Positions 1,113-61,020 are shown, counted from the first letter of the stretch. The stretch is 64,000 bases of DNA from Klebsormidium nitens (GCA_000708835.1 DF237388.1:12986-76985), one strand, 5' to 3'. Translations and numbers: made by a program. The notes: generated from the sequence alone by a model not told the origin.

Positions 1113-4100
1113 ATGGGTTCTCTTGTAGGATTCATCCTATCACGCCTTTGGAGAGCCATCATTAGAAGACCGCCCCTGAAAGCAGACCCAATGGACTCGG
1201 CCGTCTTGGACAACGGCCCCAGTTCCGCTTCCAACACTCCGACGCGCCGGCGTATCCACGGCTTCTCCGACAAACACGTGGACGAAGCGCGCGCGTCGGG
1301 CTCGCTCCAGCGCGCAGTTTGGTCGAGCCTCGCGGAGAAGTCGTCGCGGCAATGGACCCACACGTGGGAGAACACGGTCTTCTCCCCCGAGAAGAAGCTG
1401 GGCAACGTGCTGCTAACCACCGCTAACCACCTCCGGAGTGCGGCCAACCACGTGCAGGACTCGATGGGTAGCGGGGGGAGCGGGTATAAGGTTGGGGCGG
1501 GGGTTAAGACCGCGTTCTTGCTGTTGCTTCTGGTGGGGGTTGTTGGGGTTAGTTTGTATGGAACGAAAGAGAGCGTTGAGGGGGAGTGGAGTGTGGGTGG
1601 AAGGAGGTTGCAAGCGGGAGGGGGTTTGAGGAGGGGACCGGAGCTGCCAAAACCAGTCCTGAGGAAAAAGTCATTGCATGTAAGTCTTACACACCTTCTA
1701 AGCAGTAAAGCTAGTCTTAAAGCTGCTAAGCTTGACCTTTCGGCTCTGCGTTTGAATGTAGGAAACAGCAAGCTCAGCGCAGGTAAGTGTCACAGGGCTT
1801 GAACATTTGAATGCAATGGTTTCTATGTCTTTGACATTCGATCTGAGGCGCCTTCAAGTTATTCAGTGTCAAGCACCTACTCTGAGTCACGACCTTGACC
1901 TTGCTTGCTTGTGAGTTCAAGTTGAATAGGCAAGCTAATGTCAGAGGCTATGTTTCAAACCGCGAAACATGAGCAGATTGCACAAACAGCAGTACCAACG
2001 AGAGCGTAGTTTCTCATGTTTTCCTTCCTTTGCAGGCAAGGCGATACCTAGCTGACAAATTGCTCATACCGGCACAAGACCCCGTGCCAGAAAGACTCAA
2101 ACAGCTGGCGGGCAGCAAAAACAAAGCGCTTCGGAAGATTCTGATAGATGGTGGCAAGGGGACGACAAACGGGCTGGACTCGTTGACTCCCCTCAACTCG
2201 ACTTGCAAAGATGGGAAGAGACTCATCGTCGACCCAGGTTAGACATCTTCTCTCCGCAGTCTCAAAGCGCTTCACGAACTTTGTTACTCCAAACTTGTAA
2301 TCCCAGCTTTGACGCCTTTTCAGATGTTGTATGGAAAGACGGCTCTAGCTTTCGTTTCCTAATCACTAACCAGCTGGACTGTCTTTGATGCGTGACGCCT
2401 TCTCGAGTACTGAATTTTGAATGCAAATCATCGTTGCGCCGTCGACTAAGCTGCGGACCATTCCCTTCGAAAAGCCAATGATCACAACAAACCCAATCGA
2501 AGGACTTCATATCTGCGAGACTGCAGGACAGCATACTTTAGAATAGGCGGATTTCGAGCGTTCCATTCTCTCCGAAAGCTGCCCACAAAAGCAGACAGCC
2601 CCACTAAGCCTTATAATGTTTGATTCTCTTGCAGTCCTTCCGGAGAGCAACGGTTATCTCATGGTTCAGCTAAACGGGGGCCTTAACCAGCAGAGGGCGT
2701 CTATCGCAAACGCTGTCGCCGTTGCGTGGATGCTGAACGCGACGCTAGTGCTCCCGTCGTTAAGGGAGAACGCCTTTTGGCAAGACAACAGGTGAGACCT
2801 TCTTCCCGTGATCAGTGCCGCTTTTCTCCCCGATGCAGCTCGTTTGCCAAATACCTCGACGTCGAACACTTTACGGACGTCCTCAATTCTCGGACACCGT
2901 TCTAGCGTCCTCTTTTCAAGCAAATCAGGCTAGATGTTATAAAAGCACAGCTCAACTGATCGCGCCGAAAAGCAACCAGCTTTCTTCAACACGCCCCTTC
3001 CTTTTCCGCCACAGCTCGTTCGCCGAAATCTTCGACGTCGAACACTTCACGGACGTTCTTTCGGACACCGTCCGCGTCGCGTTCCAGCTGCCGATGCCGC
3101 TCCAGTACATCAAGGCGACCAAGATCGACCCGCCCGCTGACGCGAGCGCCGAGTACTACCTGAAAGAAGTGCTGCCGGTGCTAAAAAGAGAACAGGTCGT
3201 CACGCTCAGGCCTTTCACCGACAGGTGAGGACCCAGTTCTAAATGGATGGTTTGCGAGGAGATGGGTCGAACTTGGTTGCGAGACTGCCCAAAAGAAAGC
3301 CCTTTCTTGATCCTTGCTGGGCGAGATTCTTTCGCTCGTTTACGTAGTGGGTCCAAACAAGGCCGCGCCTAAATCAATCCAGCCCCCTCTCCCCCCCCCC
3401 CAAAGTTGCCCCACACAGAAAAATGTGGGGTCAAAAGCGTGTCCTCAGACAGCGCGACTAACTCAAATCCCATTTTTTCCTCCGCCAGGTTGTCCCACAC
3501 GGACGTCCCACCCGTTACGCAGTGGGTACGTTGCAAGGCCAACTTCGAAGCCCTTCGATTGGCGCCCGCGCTCGAAGAGATCGGGCGGCGCATCGTGCAA
3601 CGGCTGACGTTGTACGGACCGTTCGTGACGATCCACCTGCGCTTCGAGGACGACATCCTGGCGTGGTCCGGCTGCCGGTATGACGTCAGCAGGAAGGAGC
3701 AGCAGAAGTTCAAGGGTGAGCTGCGGGTGGTCGTGACGTCAGTAGGAGTGAAGATGAGCGTTTTCTACACCGGTACAGATGCAACCCAGGATTCTATCGT
3801 TTGGAAGGCGTTAAAGTCACACGAACAGCATCGATGTAAGAGTAAGGTGTGTTGTTTAGTGAAAACGAGATTTATTTCTGATGGCCTTTTTATCGTCACC
3901 TTCGCCGCCAAAAAGGGCCAGCAAAGGACGTTGCGCGCGCACATACCGTCAGAAAAGAGTACCCATTCTTTCGTTGAACATGCGGGGGAAAAAAGGTCCT
4001 TGAAACCGACCTGTCAAGTTGCGCAGCGAGAGGGCCCGAGACGGAGACGGAAGTGTACAGACACGCGACTGACATCTTGCCACGTGTCCTCGCGCAGACA

Positions 4101-6172
4101 TGCGCAAGATGCTCGGGTGGTCGTACCGGGAGGAGCTGGGATCACCGGAGGAGAAGCGAAGCGAAGGGCAGTGCCCGCTAACCCCGGAGGTGAGGAAAGA
4201 AGCCGGTTACACCGCCTATTCTTTGTGTTTCTCATTTAACACTCTCTTTTTGTAGCTTTGCCGAAATGTGTAGTTCGAACGGCTGCGCTCTGTCCTGCGT
4301 TCGGAAGTGCCTGGAGGCTTTTTCAATCTAGTATCTTTAAACCTCTAAGACTCTCAATCGATTCGTGCGGAGCTTCTTCGAGTCGAGGCCTCTCAAGTCG
4401 TTTGCACTGGTCACGAGTTACCACAAAGCCGCGATATCGAGATTTAGATATTAGCTGCGGACAAGAGTTCTGATCTTTGCAGTTTAGCGATCGAAGGAGT
4501 GAAGCGGTCAAGTGACACACTTTGCTCAACTCCCTGCCCGTGTCATGTATCAAACGGACCGGTTTCTTCTCAGCTGCTAATGTGAGGCCGCATTTGCGTG
4601 TGCACATCGGGCCCCGGGGGCCGGGGTGGGGCCGTACAGTGTACACCAAACCTGACCCGGCCGGGCCGAAACGGGGGAATCGCTGTCGCCAAAGATCGCA
4701 ATTTCGACCGTCTCCACTGGTCTTTTAACTCCAGACGACAAAGCCTCGCATTTATTGCCGATCTCGAACCATCACAAATGCTTGTTCCTCACTCAGTTTA
4801 AGAGCCCCAAAGTTTAAGCACCCAGAAAGTCACTTCTGGCTCAGAACTAAACCGTCCATCCTAAACCCCGCAGGAAATCGGGCGGTGGCTGCGCGGCCTC
4901 GGCTACTCGTCGCACGCGCAGATCTACCTAGCGTCCGGCAAGATCCACAACGAAGAGGAGTCGCTAGCCAAGCTGCGGACGATCTTCCCCAATCTGCGGC
5001 GGAAAGAGAACGACCTCATGAGCCGCGAGGAGATGGAGGTGTTCGGCGGGCACGCGTTCCAAATGGCAGCGCTCGACTTCTACGTTGCCGCGCACAGGTG
5101 AGCGCGGAGTATGAAACTTAAAATGAAAGGCAATCGGTGAAAACTCGCCAGCTCAACTGCACAAGTCGACCTCTTGTTTGGAAACGGAATCAATTGCAGG
5201 CAGAAGCTCGTACATCAAAACGTTCTGATCTGGGCCAAATAACTTCCATCACGCAAAGTCATGGGCATCTTGTTCTTACCAAGATGCGCACGGACTTCTC
5301 AATCAAGGTCGTTCAAAGAGCAGCATTCATCAGCCAGAGAACTTATGCTGCCCGGCCAATCACCGGCCGCCCTCTTTTCCTCACCGACTTCCGGTAGAAT
5401 CCATCCTAACCCCCGTAGATGACTTGGTGCTCAAGCCGCCAATCCCACCAACTTCTGTCCCTAATTGCTAAACCCAACCGCTGACGTCCCTTTGTCCGTT
5501 CGCAGCGACGTCTTCGTGGCCCCCTTCCCGAGCAACATGGCGGACCTAGTGGTCGGGGAGCGCGTTTACACTCGGCGCCCCGGGCAGGTGCTGGTCCCCG
5601 AGGACCGCAAGGAGCTCACCCGTCTGCTCGACGACACTGACCTCAGCGAGGACGAGTTCGCGGCGCAGGTGAGACGACGTTACGTCAACTGGTGCAGGGT
5701 TTGGTGGCGTTGAGGTAATGATAGAAGGGACTCCGATTTGCTAAAACCACAACTCTTTGAACAGGGTACTGAGAAGAAGCAGAAGCCTGACCCGTCCCAT
5801 AATGAATTCAATAACGGTCCGGAATTAGGTATCTTTCGGTCCATCCAGACAAACAGATTCTTTCCAACTGATTTGCTGGAGAGAGGGACGTTGCGATACA
5901 CTCAACTTTCAAAGGTCGGCGAAATGCGACGCCAAGAACCTTCTTGAATCCAGATTCTTCCGGATGATACTCATAAAAGTTGCAGGGCCGCCTTGTGTAA
6001 GTTGGGATCTGACAGCTGGCATCTTTTCCCGCAGGTGAAAGCGCTCCGCAAGACGTCCATGTCGAAATTCGGCCCCGAGGGGCCGGTGTACAGTAACCCG
6101 CAGAGACCCGACTCGGTTTACGCTAACCCAAGGAAGCACTGCCAGTGCGACGACTCGGTTTCAGAGATGTAG
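1113..6172 (+). CDS. O-fucosyltransferase family protein (plant GT106/O-FucT type, type II membrane), 9 exons, ~659 aa
   Basis: Exons 1113-1679, 2036-2237, 2635-2791, 3015-3224, 3489-3715, 4098-4189, 4874-5097, 5506-5668 and 6035-6172, all GT-AG and phase-consistent (1980 nt). Family motifs SNGYLMVQLNGGLNQQR..NATLVLP, FAEIFDVEHF, IHLRFEDDILAWSGC, GQCPLTPEE, ALDFYVA and SDVF..SNMA. Hydrophobic segment TAFLLLLLVGVVGVSLYG in exon 1. The start Met and the exon 1 donor are less certain. Confidence 0.88.
2821..2900 (+). repeat. Degenerate intronic copy of the O-FucT exon 4 acceptor and exon start
   Basis: tgcag|ctcgtttgccaaatacctcgacgtcgaacactttacggacgt (2839) versus acag|ctcgttcgccgaaatcttcgacgtcgaacacttcacggacgt (3015). 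Confidence 0.85.
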
Positions 6173-29400: not shown

Positions 29401-31976
29401 CGGTGGAGTAGCCCCAGAAGTTCATCCTGAAGAACCGGGAAATACCGTGTGAGGAAGCGTGCTGAGTGTGTTTTGGCGATCCCATCTTCCTAGATGGCAC
29501 TGAACTCAGTTCCTCAACTGATGCAATGACGGCTTGCTTTGCCAACCGAGCAAGCGGTCTTTAACCAGCTCTAAATGATTCCAAAAGGCCTCAGTTGTCT
29601 GTATGCAAAATGTTTCGCTTGATCCAGGAGGACAAACGTAAGTTTGAGATGCAAAATCTCAATTCTTTCGGCCCGGATTTGAGGCTGTTGAGCAGGCTTG
29701 CAATCCGCATGCAGCAGAAGCCACCTACTGAGCAGATTCCCAAGGTCCGTTTTGAATATTCTCCGTTGGAGGAACCTGGTGGACTGTCTTTGCTGAGGCC
29801 ATCTGCTTTCAAAATCTTGACTTCTTGTAAGGCAGTCATTTCGAAGATGCTGACTGGCTTGAAACCGTCAAAGCTAGGTGCTTGACCGACTGTCTGATCC
29901 AGAACACAAGTAAAGTGCCACTTACTTGTAGTCGTTCATCACGCTGTTGTATGCATAGTACTCCAGCTCGTTGAACTCATGCACCGGCATCAGCTCGATC
30001 GCATTAATGCCAAGCTGCTTCAGGTGCGGCAGCCGTTCAATAAGACCCTGGTATGTGCCGGGCGCGGAGGTCCCGCTGGATTCGTGCCGAGTGAAACCGC
30101 GCACGTGCATCTCGTAGATGATGAGGTCCTTCTGAGCAATGTTGGGGGCAATGTCGCCCTCCCAGTCAAACTGCAGGGGTACACACAGGGGCGTTGATTT
30201 TTGTGCCATGCTCTTCTAAATTTTCTGCTCAAAAGGTGTGAATCTACCAGTCCTACTGCGAAAAAGTGCTTCTTCAAGGGGTTTCAGGGGTTGCGGTGTT
30301 TGGCGAAGCTGTGAGCCCACACTAGGTTCTCAGTTGTACTCTGTACAATGAACCTGATTGCCAAGGGACTCTTTGAGCTTTTTAAGTGAAGTTGCTCAAA
30401 AGCAGAAACTTACCTCGTCCTCCTGATCCGGAACTGCCCCTGCGAGCTGTGGCCAGCAGTTCCCGTCTCCACCAGGGATGCCATATTGGGACCTGCTCAC
30501 AACAGCCTGCACACAAACCAGAACATCACCGACTGAACAGGCATATTAAGGGGCCTCTTTCTGCTGACATGTTCGATTCAAGGTTTCAGAGATAGCAAAA
30601 TTAATGGCCAGTTGCAATCAGACAAGAGCTGGCTCTTGATGTCAGCAGACTCCTACTGATTTCTCGATTCTGTTGCGCATAGATGTGCCCCGCAATGGGA
30701 AGCAACGATCAGGCGTTTAGCAAACTGCAAACTTGAGCCACGATAGGTCCTGTAGCTATTTCTCTCTCCGATTTGCAGAAAGTCTGAGCAGAAAGCACCG
30801 CGATTCTGCAGCAGATAGACCACCTGTCAGCAGCATGTTTAGGGGCGTGCCCTCAATTTGCAGGCACAGTAAACTCTTCATGCTCTTCACGGCTTTCATG
30901 AGCTTCACATTCAAAAAAAAGATTGCAGGCACCTTTGCATACGGATCTAGCATGATCTTGGTCTCATCAAACCGCTGGCCGTCCTCTGGAAGGAAAGGTC
31001 CCCCAACTCGCCACCCATAGAGCAGGTTCTTGGACAGTGCAGGCAGGAGCACATGCCAGACATCGCCCGTCCGGTTGATGAGTGGATCAAGGGGCACCTC
31101 TGCTGTCACGGTTCCCTGGAGTGTTGGAAGATAGAATACGTTGGCCTTTCGGCTTGAAAATGTAGGGAACTGAGACGCGATCATCCAAGTTTCATCAACC
31201 ATTGCAGAGGCAAAGAGCTGTTGAAGACAGAGACCTGTGCAGGCACCCTCCTCGACCACATTGCTGAACTAGGTCAGGGTGATTGGCATTGCAGAGACGC
31301 CGATTGCGGAACAATCTATAACATCGTTGCAACTGTTTGGGATCCCTAGTTTCAAGTCACAACTCTCTCCTTCGAATAGCGATGTAGAGGAATGCAGCGA
31401 ATCAGGGAATGCTGAAATGAGGTCTGGCACAGCATTCCATTGCCTCAGCCTGCAACATTGTCTCCTCACATTCTGAAGGTCTCCCTCCGTAAAGAGGCAT
31501 AGCGACACTGTGTCTGCGCCGTCTGTTGTAATTGCAAAGTTGACTCCAACCCTTCCTTGCGCCAGAGAGGCCCCTAGTGGACTGGCAGCACCCCTCTGAG
31601 GGGTATCATAGAGCACATTGAGTCCATTGCCAAAGTCCCTTCCATCACTCTGTTGAAGTGTGCTGTATCTCCTGGGGCCAGCGGTTGGGTCTAGAAGAAC
31701 TGCTGTGGTCACACCAACTCTTGATTGAGACAAGTGAAGCCCTCTTCTTTGATCACGCGCAATGCGACTTGAATGAACATTGTGGAGCGGAACAGCCTTG
31801 AAGGGAATGGAACTTGAGAGGTGACTGCAACTGCTCAAAGATTTTGAATTGCTCTCAAGCGGACGCTGACTGATGAATGCAGCATGAGGGCGACTGCTCC
31901 TGTGTTGGCACTGACTGGCGCTTGCCCCTAATGAAGTGTGCAAAGACCCCTGAACTGCCAGACAGAAGCTCTCCAT
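23499..31976 (-). CDS. ISA1: Isoamylase 1 (GH13 starch debranching enzyme) with plastid transit peptide; 14 exons, ~869 aa
   Basis: Exons 31470-31976, 30933-31115, 30414-30506, 29926-30170, 29177-29426, 28661-28746, 28095-28293, 26653-26991, 26239-26322, 25729-25809, 25196-25278, 24388-24505, 24058-24215 and 23499-23682 (2610 nt). Motifs [37 protein letters not shown], catalytic DGFRFDL / IAEPWD / FVTAHDGF, and [25 protein letters not shown]. Ser-rich N-terminus. The ELEYY..NFWGYST segment is ISA1-type. Confidence 0.93.
27787..28160 (-). repeat. Tandem triplication (~150-bp unit) of the ISA1 exon 7 3' end plus donor and adjacent intron
   Basis: agctcaccttgac..ctctgag..cccgtcgttgctg..ggcgt occurs at about 27787, 27936 and 28088 (the real exon). 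cttgaaaggaatc and aaaaagaccaaatgcttgtagtat are each present twice. Confidence 0.9.
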
Positions 31977-52249: not shown

Positions 52250-52269
52250 NNNNNNNNNNNNNNNNNNNN
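52250..52269. other. Assembly gap (20 N)
   Basis: Run of N seen directly. Confidence 0.99.
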
Positions 52270-53517: not shown

Positions 53518-53564
53518 ATGGGCTGCTCTTGCTGTCTCTCCTGGGGGAGGCGGCAAAACCCGAG
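53518..53564 (+). CDS. Candidate leader exon of paralogue 1 encoding MGCSCCLSWGRRQNP(R), a myristoylation/palmitoylation-like signal
   Basis: ATG in good context (gga ATG g). The exon ends in phase 2 at AG|GTGAAG, matching the phase-2 acceptor at 54246 (intron 53565-54246). No transcript evidence; other donors such as GTAAGT at 54058 exist. Confidence 0.4.
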
Positions 53565-54247
53565 GTGAAGGCCGACGTGAATGTTTCGAAGCCCATTTCG
53601 CGGTCACTTTTCCGATTGGTAGATATGTTGGTTCAGCATCTCAGACCTCAGGTCTTTGCGGTATATTAGCTGTTGAGTATCTCAAAGCTCAAAGCATGGT
53701 TCCGGATCTTGGACCATTTACGAAGAGGAAGAGGACACAGCATCAAACGGACAACGGCTTACGATTGCAAAGAACTCGACAGTGGGGTGTTTGACGCTTA
53801 TAGAACTTTAAAGTGGTCGAGCTTACATTCGAAGCCGCAAAGTCCAGAAGGGAGGCTCGCCTCTTGATTTGGCTGTTACGAAAGTCCTCGTTAAGGACGT
53901 CTTTGAATTCGTGTCGAAACGCGCTTCAGATTGTTCTGCAAACCGTCAGATTCACACACCTGGTTGCAGAGTAAGATACGTTTGCGCGTCCATTGCACTA
54001 CATAATGAATTTATAGTTGAGCCCTGTAGAAAGGGTGAGAGTAAAAGGTCTGGAGGTGTAAGTGAGAGGTACGAACAAGAAGCGCTGCCAAGAGGGACTA
54101 GTTGCAAAACCCAGGCAGTGCGTCCCAACTGCGAAAGCCAAGAATGATGATCTAGAATTTCGAAGCCAGAGCGCGACGCTATCTTCAATTCAAGTCGCCA
54201 GGTGTCTCCGTCCACCACTCTGATTTACCCATTTCACATCTTGCAGA

Positions 54248-55321
54248 ATGGATGCGTCTCTAGTGCAGACAATCGCGTCCCTGGATATGAACACCAGCAA
54301 CATGAGCCTGGCCCAGAGTTACGGCCTGGCCATCCAGACCGATTCTTGGGAGGACACCGCCCGCACCAAGAACAGCTGCTGGGGCCCCAACATTGCTGAC
54401 CTCACCCTCCACGTGGCGGGCTCCCGTCTCCCGATGATCCGCAAGCCCAACTTCGCTGACGTCACCGCTGACGTCCCAATGAGCTTCTTCAGCGTGACCA
54501 CCGGCAACGAGAAACCCGCTGGAGCCCTCAAGCGGGTCAGCTTTAAGGACTACGTAACCGAGACCCTGGGTCTGCCTAACCTGATTCTTAACCGCGATGA
54601 CGTCTTGCTGGCGTCAGCGCATGCGTGCGTGTTGCCATGCGGCGTCGGCGGCGAGACTGAGTTTTGCCCGCAGCTCTTCAGCTACCAGGCGCGCCCGGAC
54701 GACCCCGCCATTCTAGTTTTCGTTGCGAGCTCCCAGGAGACGTCAGCCCACGTCATCACCGGGGCTGCCGACAAGCTGCTCTTCAACCGCGGCGGCGCGG
54801 CCGCAATGTTCCTAGCGAAGCGCCTGTCGCAGGAGCGGCGCGAGCGCGGGGTTTCGGAGGCGGGCGCGATGACGGATGACGAACTAGATCGGAACGCGAT
54901 CCTCCTGTTCCAGATTCCGCTCAAACAGCGGTCCGAAGCTACCGGCTTCGTTAGACCATACATCCCCATTGCAACTGGAAGCCGCCGCCGCGCCTCCCCG
55001 CTTGCGGGCCTGGAATTCGCGACGCTGCGCGCGTCCGAAAAAACCTACGGCCCCTTCCGAGGTTTGGCAAGGTTTAAGCTCGAACGCAACGCGCGCTTCC
55101 CGATCCGCGTCACGTTCCAAATGTATACGGTGACGGACGATCCGGTTCTGAAGGAGAGCCAAATAAAAAGTCTGGCGGACAAAATCGAAAAGGTGTACGT
55201 GCGCGGCAAGGAGACGGGGAGTCTGGTGACCAACACAACGAACCGCGCAACGGAGCCGCGCCCGCTCGGGAGCGTGATGGGAGCGGAGCAGATGCCGTCC
55301 TTTAACCTGCGTGCGGAATAG
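54248..55321 (+). CDS. Uncharacterised ~357-aa protein, paralogue 1 of 3 (intact, domain in a single exon)
   Basis: Open GC3-rich ORF immediately after a 3' splice site (cacatcttgcag|a ATG). Motifs WEDTARTKNSCWGPNIADLTL, IRKPNFADVT, GNE, QLFSYQ, LLFNRGG, FQIPLK and FPIRVTFQMY. Two paralogues lie at 56225-57341 and 59924-61020. Confidence 0.85.
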   Translation: MDASLVQTIASLDMNTSNMSLAQSYGLAIQTDSWEDTARTKNSCWGPNIADLTLHVAGSRLPMIRKPNFADVTADVPMSFFSVTTGNEKPAGALKRVSFKDYVTETLGLPNLILNRDDVLLASAHACVLPCGVGGETEFCPQLFSYQARPDDPAILVFVASSQETSAHVITGAADKLLFNRGGAAAMFLAKRLSQERRERGVSEAGAMTDDELDRNAILLFQIPLKQRSEATGFVRPYIPIATGSRRRASPLAGLEFATLRASEKTYGPFRGLARFKLERNARFPIRVTFQMYTVTDDPVLKESQIKSLADKIEKVYVRGKETGSLVTNTTNRATEPRPLGSVMGAEQMPSFNLRAE

Positions 55322-56224
55322 CTTGGGAGGGAACGGAACGGAGCAGTTGTCATGGGAAGAAGAGCGGCAGCTTTGCAAGTAAATCTTAGGGGGCCGCTCA
55401 GGAGATACGGATTTTTACTGGACCCGTCGATAAATCAAGTGAAAGATAGTGGTTTGTACGATAAGCAAGGAAACAGGCCCGCCGTGCACGTTCTTAGGGG
55501 CGTAAGATCTAAGCAGCTAAGCATTCATAGTATGCCGTTGAAAACCCGTTAAACACCAACCTCAAGCATCGTGGGTGGCACTGCGGACGACGATGCAGAC
55601 TTATGAAAGTTCAATAAGTAGTATACATAGGGTATATATAACGACGGCAGGTTTTGGGACCATAAAATTTGACTCCATCTTAGTCTTAAAAACCAAATCT
55701 TGATCGAAAGCAAAACGGTTTCGTTCGAAAGCCCCAGAATGAGACCGTCTTGGATAGATATGGACGCAGATAGCAAAAGGGTCTCAAAAGCCAGTAACCT
55801 CGGGAAACTGTTTTCGAAACCAGAGACTATATCTCTGATTTCAAAAGGATTCTCGTATATAGTGAAACATTAAAATGGAGGTTCAAATAAGAGAAAGAGA
55901 GCAGCAGTGTGACGCGCATGTTTTTCGAGCCTTCGGTCAGAGCCAAACAGCACACGATGCACAATGCACATGAGCTCAAAAACCTTCCAGTTCGTGACTC
56001 AAATTCAACTAGTCACGTCCACCAGTTGCATATGTTTTCCAGCAAGTGTGCAGCGCTTGTCGATCCCTTGAGCACTAATTTCCAAGATCACCACCTCACA
56101 CACATCTTAACTTGCTTCTGTCGACTCGATCTAATACGTATCTTCTATTTCCATTATTGGTTCTTTCAAGAAACTTATCGACCAGGGTCGCCCCTCATCC
56201 AACCAGCGGCTGCTCCTTCAGACG

Positions 56225-57347
56225 CTAAAAGTTGAAGAGCGGCATCTGCTCCGCTCCGGTGACGCTTCCGAGCGGGCGCAGTTTCGTCACGCGGTTCGTC
56301 GTGTTCGTCACCAGACTCCCCGTCTCCTTGCCACGAGCGTACACCTTCCCAATCCTCTCCGGCAGACTTTTTATTTGGCTCTCCTTCAGAACCGGGTCGT
56401 CCGTCACCGTATACATCTGGAACGTCACGCGGATCGGGAAGCGCGCGTCGCGCTCGAGCTTGAACCCTTCCAAACCCCGGAAGGGGCCGTAGGTTTGGTC
56501 GGACGCGCGTAGCGTCGCGTACTCCAGGCCCGCGAGCGCGGCCTCGCGGATGCGCTCGTCGGGAGCGGCACCCGGCATCTCGCAGGCGCCAGCGAACACT
56601 GACATCTCACAGCATTCGTCACAATCCGAGTCGTACCGCCATTCAGGCGCCGGGCGCTGCTTGAGCGGGATCTGGAACAGGAGGAGCGCGTTCCGATCTA
56701 GTTCGTCGGCCGTCATCGCGCCCGCCTCCGAAACCCCGCGCTCGCGCCGGTCCTGCGACAGGCGCTTGGCTAGGAACATTGCGGCCGCGCCGCCGCGGTT
56801 GAAGAGCAGAGCTCTTGTCGGCAGCCCCGGTGATGACGTGGGCTGACGTCCCCTGGAAGCTCGCAACGAAAACTAGAATGGCGGGGTCGTCCGGGCGCGC
56901 CTGGTAGCTGAAGAGCTGCGGGCAAAACTCAGTCTCGCCGCCGACGCCGCATGGCAACACGCACGCATGCGCTGACGCCAGCAAGACGTCATCGCGGTTA
57001 AGAATCAGGTTAGGCAGACCCAAGGTCTCGGTTACGTAGTCCTTGAAGCTGACCCGCTTGAGGGCTCCAGCGGGTTTCTCGTTGCCGGTGGTCACGCTGA
57101 AGAAGCTCATTGGGACGTCAGCGGTGACGTCAGCAAAGTTGGGCTTGCGGATCATCGAGAGACGGGAGCCCGCCACGTGGAGGGTGAGGTCAGCAATGTT
57201 TGGGCCCCAGCAGCTGTTCTTGGTGCGGGCGGTGTCCTCCCAAGAAACGGTCTGGATGGCCTGGCCGTAACTCTGGGCCAGGCTCCTGTTGCTGGCGTTA
57301 CAGTTCAGGGACGCGATCTCACGAACTAGAGGCGACTCCATTTTCAC
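56225..57347 (-). pseudogene. Paralogue 2 of the uncharacterised family, frameshifted by a 4-bp insertion near 56808-56815
   Basis: About 98% identical to paralogue 1 over roughly 430 nt by eye. Copy 1 gacaag-ctgctcttc versus copy 2 gacaagAGCTctgctcttc. The downstream half continues in another frame to TAG at 56225. Acceptor ttctctgccag|GTG AAA ATG. Confidence 0.75.
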
Positions 57348-58131
57348 CTGGCAGAGAATGGAAAGCGCTGTCGAAGGTTGAAGGGCGCGAACTTTTTCTT
57401 GGAAATGTTCTCCCTTTACTGTTGTTTGGCGTGCGAAACAGAAAGGAGTCCAAGGACACAGACAACGGTGAAGCTCCTGCAGAATTGCAGAACTTCCAAT
57501 ACGACATCGGACAAGCAGAAGCCTAATTTCGATCACGAAGGTTCCCGAGGCGTCTCTGGATTTATCACGTTGGCATGGTTTGATCTGCTTTCCAGTTGTG
57601 TGTTTGTAGCATACGAAGCTCCGCCAAAGTCTATGCACAGCGGAATCTGAGCTCAGAACAGGAGCAAGCTACCTCTTTTTATGAAATTATAGAAAGGCCA
57701 CAGAGTGCTGCTAGAATGACTCATGCCTGTGCCGAGCGGGGGTTTCTATCTGCGAAACTGAAAGAGGTAACCAATCCTCCGAGCTTTCGGGAGAAGCTGT
57801 GACCATTTGACGACACTGATCTCAAATCTGTTAATTTTAATCTTTTCCCATTTTGTCGTTCTTCTCCCTTTCAAGAGTCTAATCCGTCGTTAAGAACTTC
57901 AGTCTCAAGCTTGTGGCAAATCACTTCACATAAATCAAGTGTTCTCAAGCTCTTTACAACATGATCTTTGAACAAACTCCCTCAAGAAGATTCCGAGTCT
58001 TCGTCTCAACGTGTAAGCCTCGAAAGGTTCCTCTTGCGACAAATCAGCACCGACTCTAGATTCCTGAAGCAGGGACATAAGAGCAGCTGAAAAACGACAA
58101 AAGGTTGAACAAAATTTTTGTGTGCACTTAC

Positions 58132-58299
58132 CGTGGTCCTGTATGCTGAAGCTCCTTGTCCGGAAGGGGTGGCGTTCAAGACTCCCTGTAGTGTGAGCGC
58201 GGGGTTTGCTTTCACGATAAACCTCCTGGCTGCAGTAGACGGTCTTACAGCTTTTGGTAAAAGGGATTTGCTCAGCAAGCGCAGACTTTGAAAAGACAT
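58132..58299 (-). CDS. Candidate leader exon of paralogue 2 encoding a transit-peptide-like sequence (MSFQSLRLLSKSLLPKAVRPSTAARRFIVKA...)
   Basis: 56 codons, rich in Ser/Arg/Lys/Ala/Leu with no acidic residues and a VKA-type cleavage motif. It ends ACG|GTAAGT in phase 0, matching the phase-0 acceptor at 57348 (intron 784 bp). Confidence 0.6.
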
Positions 58300-59923
58300 T
58301 GTGGCCGCCTTCAAACCTCACAGCAGTAGGCCCGCTTCACCAAACAGAGTGATCTGGCGTAGTAGTGAGAGTTTTGACACTTTTCGAGGTCAAGAGTCGC
58401 GTCAGCAGTGACGTTTCCGCGCGGAGGGCACACGCAGACGTGTTTGAGCAATCACAGCCGTCGATTCACAAGCTGTGCGGCTGATCGACGGCTGTCAGGT
58501 TGTTGGGTAGAGTTGGGAGAGCGGGGTTTCACGGCTGACAACTTAGGAATTGGAAGGCCAACATACACCCTCAAGCCGCTTGCATCATAGCGCCCATACT
58601 GAGTATCTAGATGCAGGAGAAGAGGTTGCAGTACCTCAGGAACCTGCGAAGTGCACCTGACGTCTCACAACAGCTTCCAAATTTCGCCGTCGATTCTGCA
58701 CAGCGTGCATTGACGGCTATCGATTGCTCAGGCACGTCCCTCCATGACCTCAGGTCACGTTACTGCTGACACGGCAAACCTGGCATCCGAGTAGCCGACG
58801 GCCGTGCTGTCACGACCTTCTTTTGTGACACTCACATCGCTCCAAATTCCAATCCTCGATCAGCTTTGCAGCCGGGTAAACTACAGCGCATGGGTCAGTC
58901 AGTAACGGCTGTGAAAGTGAAGGAGCTTCTGAAGGTGGTGTCCACAATCAGCCTGACAAAGCCTGCGCTTGCTAAGGGACCTAGTCACCAGAAGATCTGC
59001 ACATGACGGTGCAGCGAGGAAGTTTGAAGCGCTCACAAAACTGGGGGTTCAGGTTCAAGTTCTGATCGCCGCCCGTTCCTGGAATAAGGAAGCAAATTTG
59101 CCCGGCAAACAAGCACAAAGGTAAGGGGACTTCACCAGAGCTAGCCTAAAGTTTGTTTAACCTTCTGACGCTTTTCATCCGCTTGTATGCCGATTTTGAT
59201 TGTGAAAGCCCAGGTCAGTGCTCCTGCGTTGCACGAAACATGTAACTAGAAATGTATTGGCTTGCACAAGACCAAGACGAGTCTTTCTTCCTTGAAAGAC
59301 TTTGTTCAAGAGTTCCGTAACAAGGCCTGAGGACGATCGTCTTTGCACAGCAGCGGTCTGAAGTCACATCGCGATGTAGTGTACGGTTTTGTTCATGAAA
59401 AGGAAGACGAAATACAAGATGAGCAACGTGAAGAATCACAAATTCTGAGTCGTCAATTGGTCACAACTTCGAATTTCTCTCAATGCAAGGATTATTGTCT
59501 ACTTCTTGCTCCTGGCAGCGGTAGCTTGGAGGTATCTACTCTCGCAGCGCTTTGTCTCCGGCTTTCTGACTTGACAATTGACATTGCATTCAAACTTGAC
59601 CATGTCTTCCGATCGGGTTCCGCTATCATTTGTCATGGACGTTTTGTACCTTGCATTGGAACAAGTTGTCTCTTTTCTTGAAATCCTGGACAAATGCAGT
59701 CACTAGACGAACATTTCAAACCTAATAAGCAGCCAAAGACGTCTCGAGAATCTCAGTCACCAGAATCGGCGTATAACATGACCACTTCTTCCTCGTTTGT
59801 GCCAGGACTCACAATAGCTTCACCTTATGTGTCCCTCTGAAACCCCTGGATCTCAAGAGGGAGAGGAGTAATCCGCCAGGTGGCTTCACCTCATCAAATA
59901 CTCGTCCACATCTGCAGATAACA

Positions 59924-61020
59924 ATGGACTCGTCTCTAGTTGAAGAGATTGCGTCCCTGGAGGATCTCGCCAGCAACATCAGCCTGGCCCACAGTTACGG
60001 CCTGGCCATCCAGACCGTTTCTTGGGAGGACACCGCTCGTACCAAGAACAGCTGCTGGGGGCCCAACATTGCTGACCTCACCCTCCACGTGGCCGACTTT
60101 GATCTCCCGATGATCCGCAAGCCCAACTTCGCTGACGTCACCGCTGACGTCCCAATGAGCTTCTTCAGCGTGACCACCGGCAACGAGAAACCCGCTGGAA
60201 ACCTAAAGCGGGTTAGCTTCAAGGACTACGTAACCGAGACCCTGGGTCTGCCTGACCTGATTTTGGACCGCGATGGCGTCCTGCTGGCGTCAGCGCAGGC
60301 GTGCGTGCTGCCCGGTGCGGCGTCAGCGGCGAGACGGAGTTCTGCCCGCAGCTCTTCAGCTACCAGGCGCGCCCGGACGACCCCGCCGCTCTAGTTATCA
60401 TGGCGAGCTCCCAGGGGACGTCAGCCCACGTCATCACTGGAGACGACGACAAGCTGCTCTTCAACCGCGGCGGCGCGGCCGCGATGTTCCTAGCGAAGCG
60501 CCTGTCGCAGGACCGGCGCGAGCGCGGGGTTCCGGAGGCGGGCGCGATGACAGACGACGAACTAGATCGGAACGCGCTTCTCCTGTTCCAGATCCCGCTG
60601 AAGCAGCGCCCGGCGCCCAAACGGCGGTACCATTCTGGGTATGAAAGCGCCAAATGCAGTTTCAGAGGCGGCGCGGCGGCCGGGTCCGCGCGCAAAGCAT
60701 GCAAACACGCGCGCGATGCCTCCCCGCGCGCGGGCCTGGAGTACGCGACGCTGCGGGCGTCGGACAAAACGTGCGGCCCCTTCCGGGGTTTGGGAGGGTT
60801 TAAGCTCGAGCGCGACGCGCGCTTCCCGATCCGCGTCACGTTCCAGATGTATACGGTGACGGACGACCCGGTTCTGAAGGAGAGCCAAATAAAAAGTCTG
60901 GCGGACAAAATCGAAAAGGTGTACGCGCGTGGCGAGGAGGCGGGGAGTCTGGTGACGAACATAACGGAGCGCGCTACAGAGCCGCGCCCGCTCGCGAGCT
61001 CCGCCGGAGGGGAGCTCTAG
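59924..61020 (+). pseudogene. Paralogue 3 of the uncharacterised family, frameshifted near 60313-60315
   Basis: Copy 1 ttg cca tgc ggc versus copy 3 ctg ccc GG tgc ggc (+2 nt). The homologous reading continues in ORF 60301-61020. Acceptor cacatctgcag|ATA ACA ATG. Confidence 0.75.

Follow-up and report, generated by a model that had tools for sequence, protein, structure and literature searches.

A giant-virus-type gene in the streptophyte alga Klebsormidium nitens: a local three-copy array of most likely viral origin

Gene flow from giant viruses to algae is already established. The closest described case in the same host comprises several distinct phycodnavirus-like inserts in the Klebsormidium flaccidum/nitens genome (PMC5294986), and K. 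nitens genes of viral ancestry have been found to be enriched in repressive methylation (PMC12344493). Here we analysed a 64-kb stretch of a scaffold of the streptophyte alga K. nitens (GCA_000708835.1 DF237388.1:12986-76985; hereafter the window), in which a repeat search identified one coding unit of ~1.07 kb present three times in the order +/-/+, as had been claimed, together with local amplification, in an original prediction made from the DNA alone. The three copies are annotated as KFL_004390080, KFL_004390090 and KFL_004390100 (copies 1 to 3, respectively). Apart from K. nitens, the family to which they belong occurs in giant viruses and, sporadically, in bacteria, so that a giant virus is the most likely source of the algal gene. 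Taking origin and mechanism jointly, we consider it likely that a giant-virus gene was integrated into the host genome and duplicated there, and that its product acts at a site for an anionic ligand. Literature searches by locus tag, protein accession or assembly accession found no publication. The array is laid out in the window as follows:

52250-52269, no strand: assembly gap of 20 N, read from the sequence
54247-55321, plus strand: main exon of copy 1 (KFL_004390080), with its ATG at 54248 and a stop ending at 55321, 357 codons
56225-57341, minus strand: copy 2 (KFL_004390090), from repeat and homology (repeat match ~56225-57350)
59924-61020, plus strand: copy 3 (KFL_004390100), from repeat and homology (repeat match 59915-61020)

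The open reading frame (ORF) of copy 1 (54248-55321) is the longest in the entire window, and its product matches that of KFL_004390080 (GAQ88560.1) at 100% identity; the public protein model of this gene, P0001, has two exons, and the main exon served as a search query. Homologues were recovered at expect values (E) of 1e-45 to 1e-156, the lowest against members from outside Klebsormidium; this rules out chance for the homology of this copy. The motif series given in the original prediction was found in copy 1, where it corresponds to the conserved core of the family. DNA identity among the three copies is 84-90%. Copies 1 and 2 are convergent with ~0.9 kb between them, and copies 2 and 3 are divergent with ~2.6 kb between them, the spacers of 0.9-2.6 kb having a GC content of 45-50%.

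A profile search that read proteins of every length revealed a large family, with 1,563 clusters at 50% identity at E<=1e-3, 1,207 at E<=1e-10 and 505 at E<=1e-30, ranging from 265 to 670 residues among the matches listed. From giant viruses there are nine IMG/VR loci, some of them in complete genomes (617,453, 1,021,348 and 1,259,197 bp), and the family extends over several of their lineages, comprising genomes of Megavirus, Moumouvirus and Cafeteria roenbergensis virus (CroV) size and a Marseillevirus-like metagenome-assembled genome (MAG). Foldseek searches of the structure library BFVD also identified true homologues in Marseillevirus LCMAC202 (A0A481YYX2; E 5e-43) and Moumouvirus goulette (M1PVX0; E 3e-38). 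In bacteria, a one-genome-per-species collection yielded 279 loci, 31-38% identical, patchily distributed among Cyanobacteria, Myxococcota, Planctomycetota, Spirochaetota, Armatimonadota, Omnitrophota and other phyla. The expectation of relatives in giant viruses and some bacteria was therefore well founded, as shown by the IMG/VR and BFVD members and the bacterial loci; that of scattered protists or fungi was not confirmed, no such named protein occurring among the matches listed. Two word searches listed 61 and 120 matches, mostly unnamed, and no eukaryote other than K. nitens carried a name or EukProt label among them. Some of the environmental contigs (L042, L057 and others) bear implausible Klebsiella or Enterobacterales bin labels.

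Among the matches listed, those closest to the algal proteins from outside Klebsormidium (47-60% identity) come from compact contigs with a GC content of 32-48% that carry virus-type genes:

Contig of a near relative: major capsid gene of nucleocytoplasmic large DNA viruses (NCLDV), as a neighbour gene
Contig of a near relative: D5-type primase, as a neighbour gene
Contig of a near relative: aminoacyl-tRNA synthetases and eIF-1a, as neighbour genes
Contig of a near relative: F-box, RCC1 and ankyrin genes, as neighbour genes
Contig of a near relative: viral-type rhodopsin and RNase HII, as neighbour genes
Contig of a near relative: kinase, methyltransferase and cellulase, as neighbour genes
L091:1593-3382 and L092:4765-5601: D12-class adenine methylase, with an EcoRI-like endonuclease also present on L091

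A D12 methylase beside the family gene, alone or together with an EcoRI-like gene, recalls the restriction-modification genes known from algal viruses. A further observation concerns a single NCBI assembly (L096; GCA_013566075.1, JACCDY010085657.1) that holds five variants at least 90% identical (P0061 and P0064-P0067); an NCLDV major capsid gene lies 5 kb from one of these. The set could be multi-copy giant-virus DNA inside or alongside a genome.

Phylogenetic reconstruction by neighbour joining (290 sequences, 301 trimmed columns, 100 bootstraps) placed 78 of 79 bacterial loci in one clade with a bootstrap of 99, with Klebsormidium outside it. The exception, L010 (JAAGZN010000066.1, a 2.7-kb contig labelled 'Bacteroidetes MAG'), falls among the non-bacterial sequences and is possibly a viral contig assigned to the wrong bin. 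A Klebsormidium-type clade (bootstrap 100) unites P0001 and P0004 with three metagenomic proteins that are 65-68% identical and have a similarly high GC content at third codon positions (GC3). This clade lies in the non-bacterial part of the tree, among compact virus-context contigs, and on the trimmed columns the best identity to P0001 is 0.54-0.59 for virus-context sequences versus at most 0.43 for bacterial ones.

Beyond the array, a fourth paralogue, KFL_001700150, was identified on a gap-free 23-kb stretch between intron-rich genes:

L099:11711-13070: coding region of KFL_001700150, in two frames ~180 nt apart, split within the variable linker

The split reflects either an intron gained in the linker or a frame change. 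Homology of the three copies, KFL_001700150 and a related metagenomic gene starts at a common ATG, upstream of which the regions are unalignable, and neither shared synteny nor flank homology was found among the array, the KFL_001700150 locus and the related metagenomic contig. Copy 1 has a GC content of 0.62 and a GC3 of 0.78, compared with a GC3 of 0.11-0.59 in its viral relatives. The ratio of non-synonymous to synonymous divergence (dN/dS) is 0.36 and 0.45 against KFL_001700150, 0.22 against the related metagenomic gene on L090, and 0.35-0.72 between array copies when these are compared piecewise. High GC3 and dN/dS values below 1, combined with the presence of a paralogue on host DNA free of gaps, point to an old, host-integrated acquisition that would have been followed by local duplication.

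Within the window, matches to O-FucT (GDP-fucose protein O-fucosyltransferase; 3406-4239) and CBM_48 (carbohydrate-binding module 48; 30756-31259) were seen as ORF fragments only, which is consistent with intron-split, host-type genes in the left part and with the intron-dense neighbours originally described. To the right of the gap, an ORF scan of the block at 52.3-64 kb revealed no other convincing ORF, in keeping with its earlier description as gene-poor. We also considered whether the array belongs to a giant endogenous viral element and rejected this, as neither hallmark genes such as those for capsid, polymerase, packaging ATPase, VLTF3 and D5 nor dense intronless ORFs surround it and its spacers measure 0.9-2.6 kb.

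These features would fit a history in which an ancestor of Klebsormidium took up the gene from a giant virus (Nucleocytoviricota), the donor probably being related to the phycodnavirus-like viruses with known inserts in the K. nitens genome. After integration the gene would have acquired host-like codon usage and undergone at least three duplications, giving rise to the +/-/+ array and to KFL_001700150 elsewhere; copies 1 and 2 would then have been partly homogenised by gene conversion, and the frame changes seen in copies 2 and 3 would represent very recent decay or assembly error.

Copy 1 is intact as one frame and keeps all 35 of the family-conserved positions. Copies 2 and 3, as assembled, require two frames, with one uncompensated frame change each; no in-frame stops occur within the aligned pieces of either copy, and when the pieces are read separately their DNA still encodes 35/35 conserved positions. 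The frame changes are therefore either very recent or assembly errors. The public models of these two copies (P0005 and P0006, respectively) span the frame changes by predicted introns and keep 31/35 conserved positions, a block of the conserved core being lost from each. Because these introns cut out core that the DNA still encodes, the models KFL_004390090 and KFL_004390100 are probably wrong. The earlier statement that all copies are intron-free holds to the extent that none contains an intron-sized insertion, linker length alone being variable; a single open frame is present in copy 1 only. Divergence between copies 1 and 2 is unequal along their length: the 5' half (54247-54775 versus 56814-57342) is 95% identical with a synonymous divergence (dS) of 0.06, whereas the 3' part is ~86% identical with a dS of 0.35, which suggests that gene conversion acted between these inverted neighbours. 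As to the domestication originally claimed, the kept residues and dN/dS below 1 argue for it, at most for copy 1 and KFL_001700150, both of which look functional, whereas the two frame-broken copies argue against it.

The original prediction further attributed domestication to a gain of upstream leader exons. The public model of copy 1 contains the following two features ahead of the main exon:

53518-53564, plus strand: predicted leader exon of KFL_004390080, 16 codons, present in public model P0001 only
53565-54246, plus strand: predicted intron of copy 1, GT..AG, with donor gtgaag and acceptor ...cttgcag

The predicted leader starts with MGCSCC, a possible N-myristoylation/palmitoylation signal, and if such an acylated leader exists, it would tether the protein to a membrane. 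No counterpart of this exon was found upstream of copies 2 and 3, and the viral and bacterial homologues begin at the position equivalent to ATG 54248. The basis of the leader-exon claim accordingly reduces to one predicted 16-codon exon in one copy.

With the generation of an AlphaFold model for the copy 1 protein (33 homologues; predicted local distance difference test score (pLDDT) 85.9, predicted template modelling score 0.85), we examined the architecture of the product, which is divided as follows:

54317-54934, plus strand: beta-rich N-lobe of copy 1 (P0001 residues ~40-245), holding most of the invariant polar residues
54941-55009, plus strand: variable, disordered linker of copy 1, pLDDT <50
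55013-55234, plus strand: C-lobe of copy 1, beta-beta-alpha-beta (P0001 residues ~272-345), followed by a short conserved tail

In the family alignment, this linker is hypervariable. Conservation across 291 members reaches at least 95% at 35 positions, including six Arg, five Asp, three each of Ser, Thr and Asn, and two each of Tyr and Gln, with no His; two Cys that are conserved in a smaller alignment fall below 95% in the 291-member alignment. Most members also carry a short proline/hydrophobic/phenylalanine motif C-terminal of the conserved core, which could be a docking motif.

Searches of Pfam, NCBIfam, PADLOC and PDB sequences, by single sequence or profile, gave no match to the core, the best profile hit among PDB sequences having an E of only 1.7. 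Foldseek comparison of the model with the PDB likewise returned no fold relative (best E 0.013; template modelling (TM) score <0.2 throughout), and the domain originally termed uncharacterised is indeed absent from both Pfam and the PDB. A number of candidate identities were rejected on these and related grounds. Known solved enzyme or pore-former folds, such as ADP-ribosyltransferase and gasdermin, gave no usable Foldseek match in the PDB; a gasdermin-like cleavable pore former, considered for its layout of N-lobe, linker and C-lobe, was further disfavoured by the polar nature of the conserved residues and the lack of a protease neighbour. A cysteine protease or deubiquitinase, as well as an E2 or E3, found no Pfam or NCBIfam match in the core, and the cysteine protease and deubiquitinase readings were dropped because no His is conserved and Cys is not universal. 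A known anti-phage defence protein was set aside, there being no PADLOC match and no conserved neighbour in 80 bacterial loci.

A minority of the non-bacterial family members possess accessory modules joined to the core. A ubiquitin-like domain is inserted in the linker of five members, with its di-glycine terminus kept in two; these include the viral-context proteins P0012, P0014, P0015 and P0020 (L092:5754-7373). Since P0015 and P0020 keep a terminal arginine-glycine-glycine, host ubiquitin-processing enzymes might cut there. PB1 is present in two members (one with CUE and one with C1) and ZZ in two (in one or two copies), and further modules comprise SAM, C1, DUF2934 and the C-terminal region of capsid protein P11 (P11_C); the carriers are P0185, P0160, P0194, P0199, P0170, P0189, P0031 and P0036. 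The P11_C insertions occur at the linker site, and the ZZ fingers lie C-terminal of the N-lobe. No ubiquitin, PB1, ZZ, CUE, SAM or other accessory module was detected in the Klebsormidium proteins.

From these features, the product would be a soluble two-lobe protein of ~360 residues, in which the near-invariant residues (six Arg, five Asp and the Ser, Thr, Asn, Tyr and Gln positions) most likely line up as a site for a ligand that is anionic and bears phosphate; this site would bind its ligand and probably act on it. Fusions to ubiquitin, PB1, ZZ, CUE and SAM modules hint that in viral and eukaryote-type relatives the core may work at host-cell assemblies that are scaffolded or marked with ubiquitin; together with the conserved residues they suggest a protein, enzyme or ligand binder, that is linked to scaffolds of the ubiquitin type. 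Bacterial gene neighbourhoods give no operon clue to function: clustering of the ORFs around 80 loci brought up no operon partner, the recurrent families being abundant ones such as histidine kinases. The most far-reaching proposal would be a new enzyme fold with which giant viruses, and now and then bacteria, bind or modify a phosphate-bearing ligand at ubiquitin-marked host assemblies, a viral copy having been co-opted by Klebsormidium and perhaps anchored to a membrane by an acylated leader; we regard this as speculative and rather unlikely as a whole.

A number of observations weigh against the proposed viral acquisition and its functional interpretation. The nodes that nest the Klebsormidium clade have bootstraps of 36, 13, 12 and then 51 (for a 26-member group), all from neighbour joining only; of the horizontal acquisition originally proposed, the position outside the bacterial clade and among virus-context sequences is supported, but the nesting there only weakly. 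The relatives are mostly unlabelled metagenomic proteins, the viral nature of which was checked for about a dozen. Near the array no viral hallmark gene was found, and the flank genes of 16 viral loci had no match elsewhere in the window. The array lies to the right of the 20-N gap, which forms its sole connection to the intron-rich left part of the scaffold, and two of its three copies carry the frame changes described above. As to function, the interpretation draws on the chemistry of the conserved residues and the few domain fusions that a minority of members show, and the bacterial members, lacking a conserved neighbour, weigh on it as well.

The genes might instead be inert: silenced, decaying leftovers of a viral insert and not domesticated genes. 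Such a relic would be in line with the frame changes in two of the three copies, with dN/dS values between copies that are just moderately below 1 (0.35-0.72), with the repressive methylation of K. nitens genes of viral ancestry (PMC12344493) and with a leader exon that is a prediction for a single copy. Yet all three copies and the paralogue encode 35/35 conserved positions, dN/dS is 0.22-0.45 against the paralogue and the related gene, the GC3 of copy 1 (0.78 versus 0.11-0.59 in viral relatives) is as expected from long host residence, and there is no other viral debris near the array; we therefore view an inert relic as a real but unlikely contender. The direction of transfer might alternatively have been from host to virus, an old eukaryotic gene of the Klebsormidium lineage or wider having been captured by giant viruses and lost in other eukaryotes. 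The weakly supported nesting within viral sequences leaves room for this, as do the eukaryote-type modules on relatives (PB1, ZZ, CUE, SAM and ubiquitin) and the many metagenomic relatives of unknown origin, but no second named or EukProt-labelled eukaryote appeared among the 181 matches listed, the family occurs in several giant-virus lineages (of Megavirus, Moumouvirus and CroV size, and the Marseillevirus-like MAG), and the domain is intronless although the genome is intron-dense. We consider this direction improbable.

Two further explanations concern the source of the DNA. A bacterial donor would be suggested by the 279 loci in many phyla, which are single-exon and of equal length, but is very improbable given that the bacterial clade (bootstrap 99) excludes Klebsormidium and that bacterial identities reach at most 0.43, compared with 0.54-0.59 for virus-context sequences. 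Contamination or mis-assembly, in which scaffolding would have brought foreign DNA, viral or bacterial, into the algal assembly, draws on the 20-N gap as the only tie between the array and host genes and on the lack of a verified host gene at 52.3-64 kb. It is nevertheless hardly credible, as the paralogue sits on a gap-free host stretch, the region has long spacers and no dense packing of genes, no viral relative has a comparable GC3, divergence between the copies amounts to 10-16%, and a 67%-identical gene lies on a related metagenomic contig of similar composition. Taken together, these comparisons leave acquisition from a giant virus, followed by integration and duplication in the host, as the explanation we prefer.

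As an event, this acquisition would add one more case of transfer to a genome in which viral inserts were already known. Its broader interest lies in the family, which is large (more than 1,000 clusters at 50% identity) and uncharacterised, with no Pfam model, no solved relative and no PDB fold match, and which is common to several giant-virus lineages and to a patchy set of bacteria, some viral versions possessing a linker-inserted ubiquitin. A streptophyte with intact, host-adapted copies would offer a rare route to study a widespread viral protein of unknown function, and, if the co-option of a new enzyme fold were true, the alga would be the one cellular eukaryote where the viral activity could be examined as a resident gene. 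The analysis also flags the public models KFL_004390090 and KFL_004390100 as candidates for correction.

Among known systems, proteins of the p62/NBR1 type, scaffolds that combine PB1, ZZ and a ubiquitin-binding module, resemble the few family members that carry PB1, ZZ or CUE; the modules are, however, accessory here and missing from the Klebsormidium proteins, and the conserved core is unrelated to the p62/NBR1 domains. Local but significant Foldseek matches (E 1e-6 to 1e-4) were obtained to small uncharacterised proteins of many large DNA viruses, among them the Wsv390-like, AcORF17-like and P22.2-like proteins of arthropod viruses and proteins of Pithovirus, Sylvanvirus and Yasminevirus. 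These matches are poor (TM ~0.3-0.5 on the shorter partner), and the proteins are far shorter and without sequence similarity; based on the models, a wider viral superfamily with a common beta-rich N-lobe, including Wsv390-like and Pithovirus proteins, may nonetheless exist. The bacterial members (Lyngbya confervoides, Spirulina sp., and MAGs of Myxococcota, Planctomycetota, Spirochaetota and Armatimonadota) are solitary genes of the same length with the conserved positions, but differ in forming a separate tight clade (bootstrap 99) at 31-38% identity and without a conserved neighbour.

Further counterparts are the giant-virus proteins A0A481YYX2, M1PVX0 and their kin, full-length homologues with the same two-lobe core, invariant residues and variable linker. 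Those homologues reside in AT-rich, gene-dense genomes, and some have added modules (ubiquitin, P11_C or an ice-binding-like repeat), whereas the algal copies are GC3-rich, spaced at kilobase distances and associated with one predicted leader exon. At the level of the locus, the phycodnavirus-like inserts of K. flaccidum/nitens (Gallot-Lavallee and Blanc 2017, PMC5294986) share with the array the same host, the same proposed direction of transfer and duplicated, diverged copies. Those inserts occupy contigs dominated by viral genes, complete with hallmark genes, in contrast to the array, which comprises one gene family only, has a host-like composition and lies apart from any hallmark gene.

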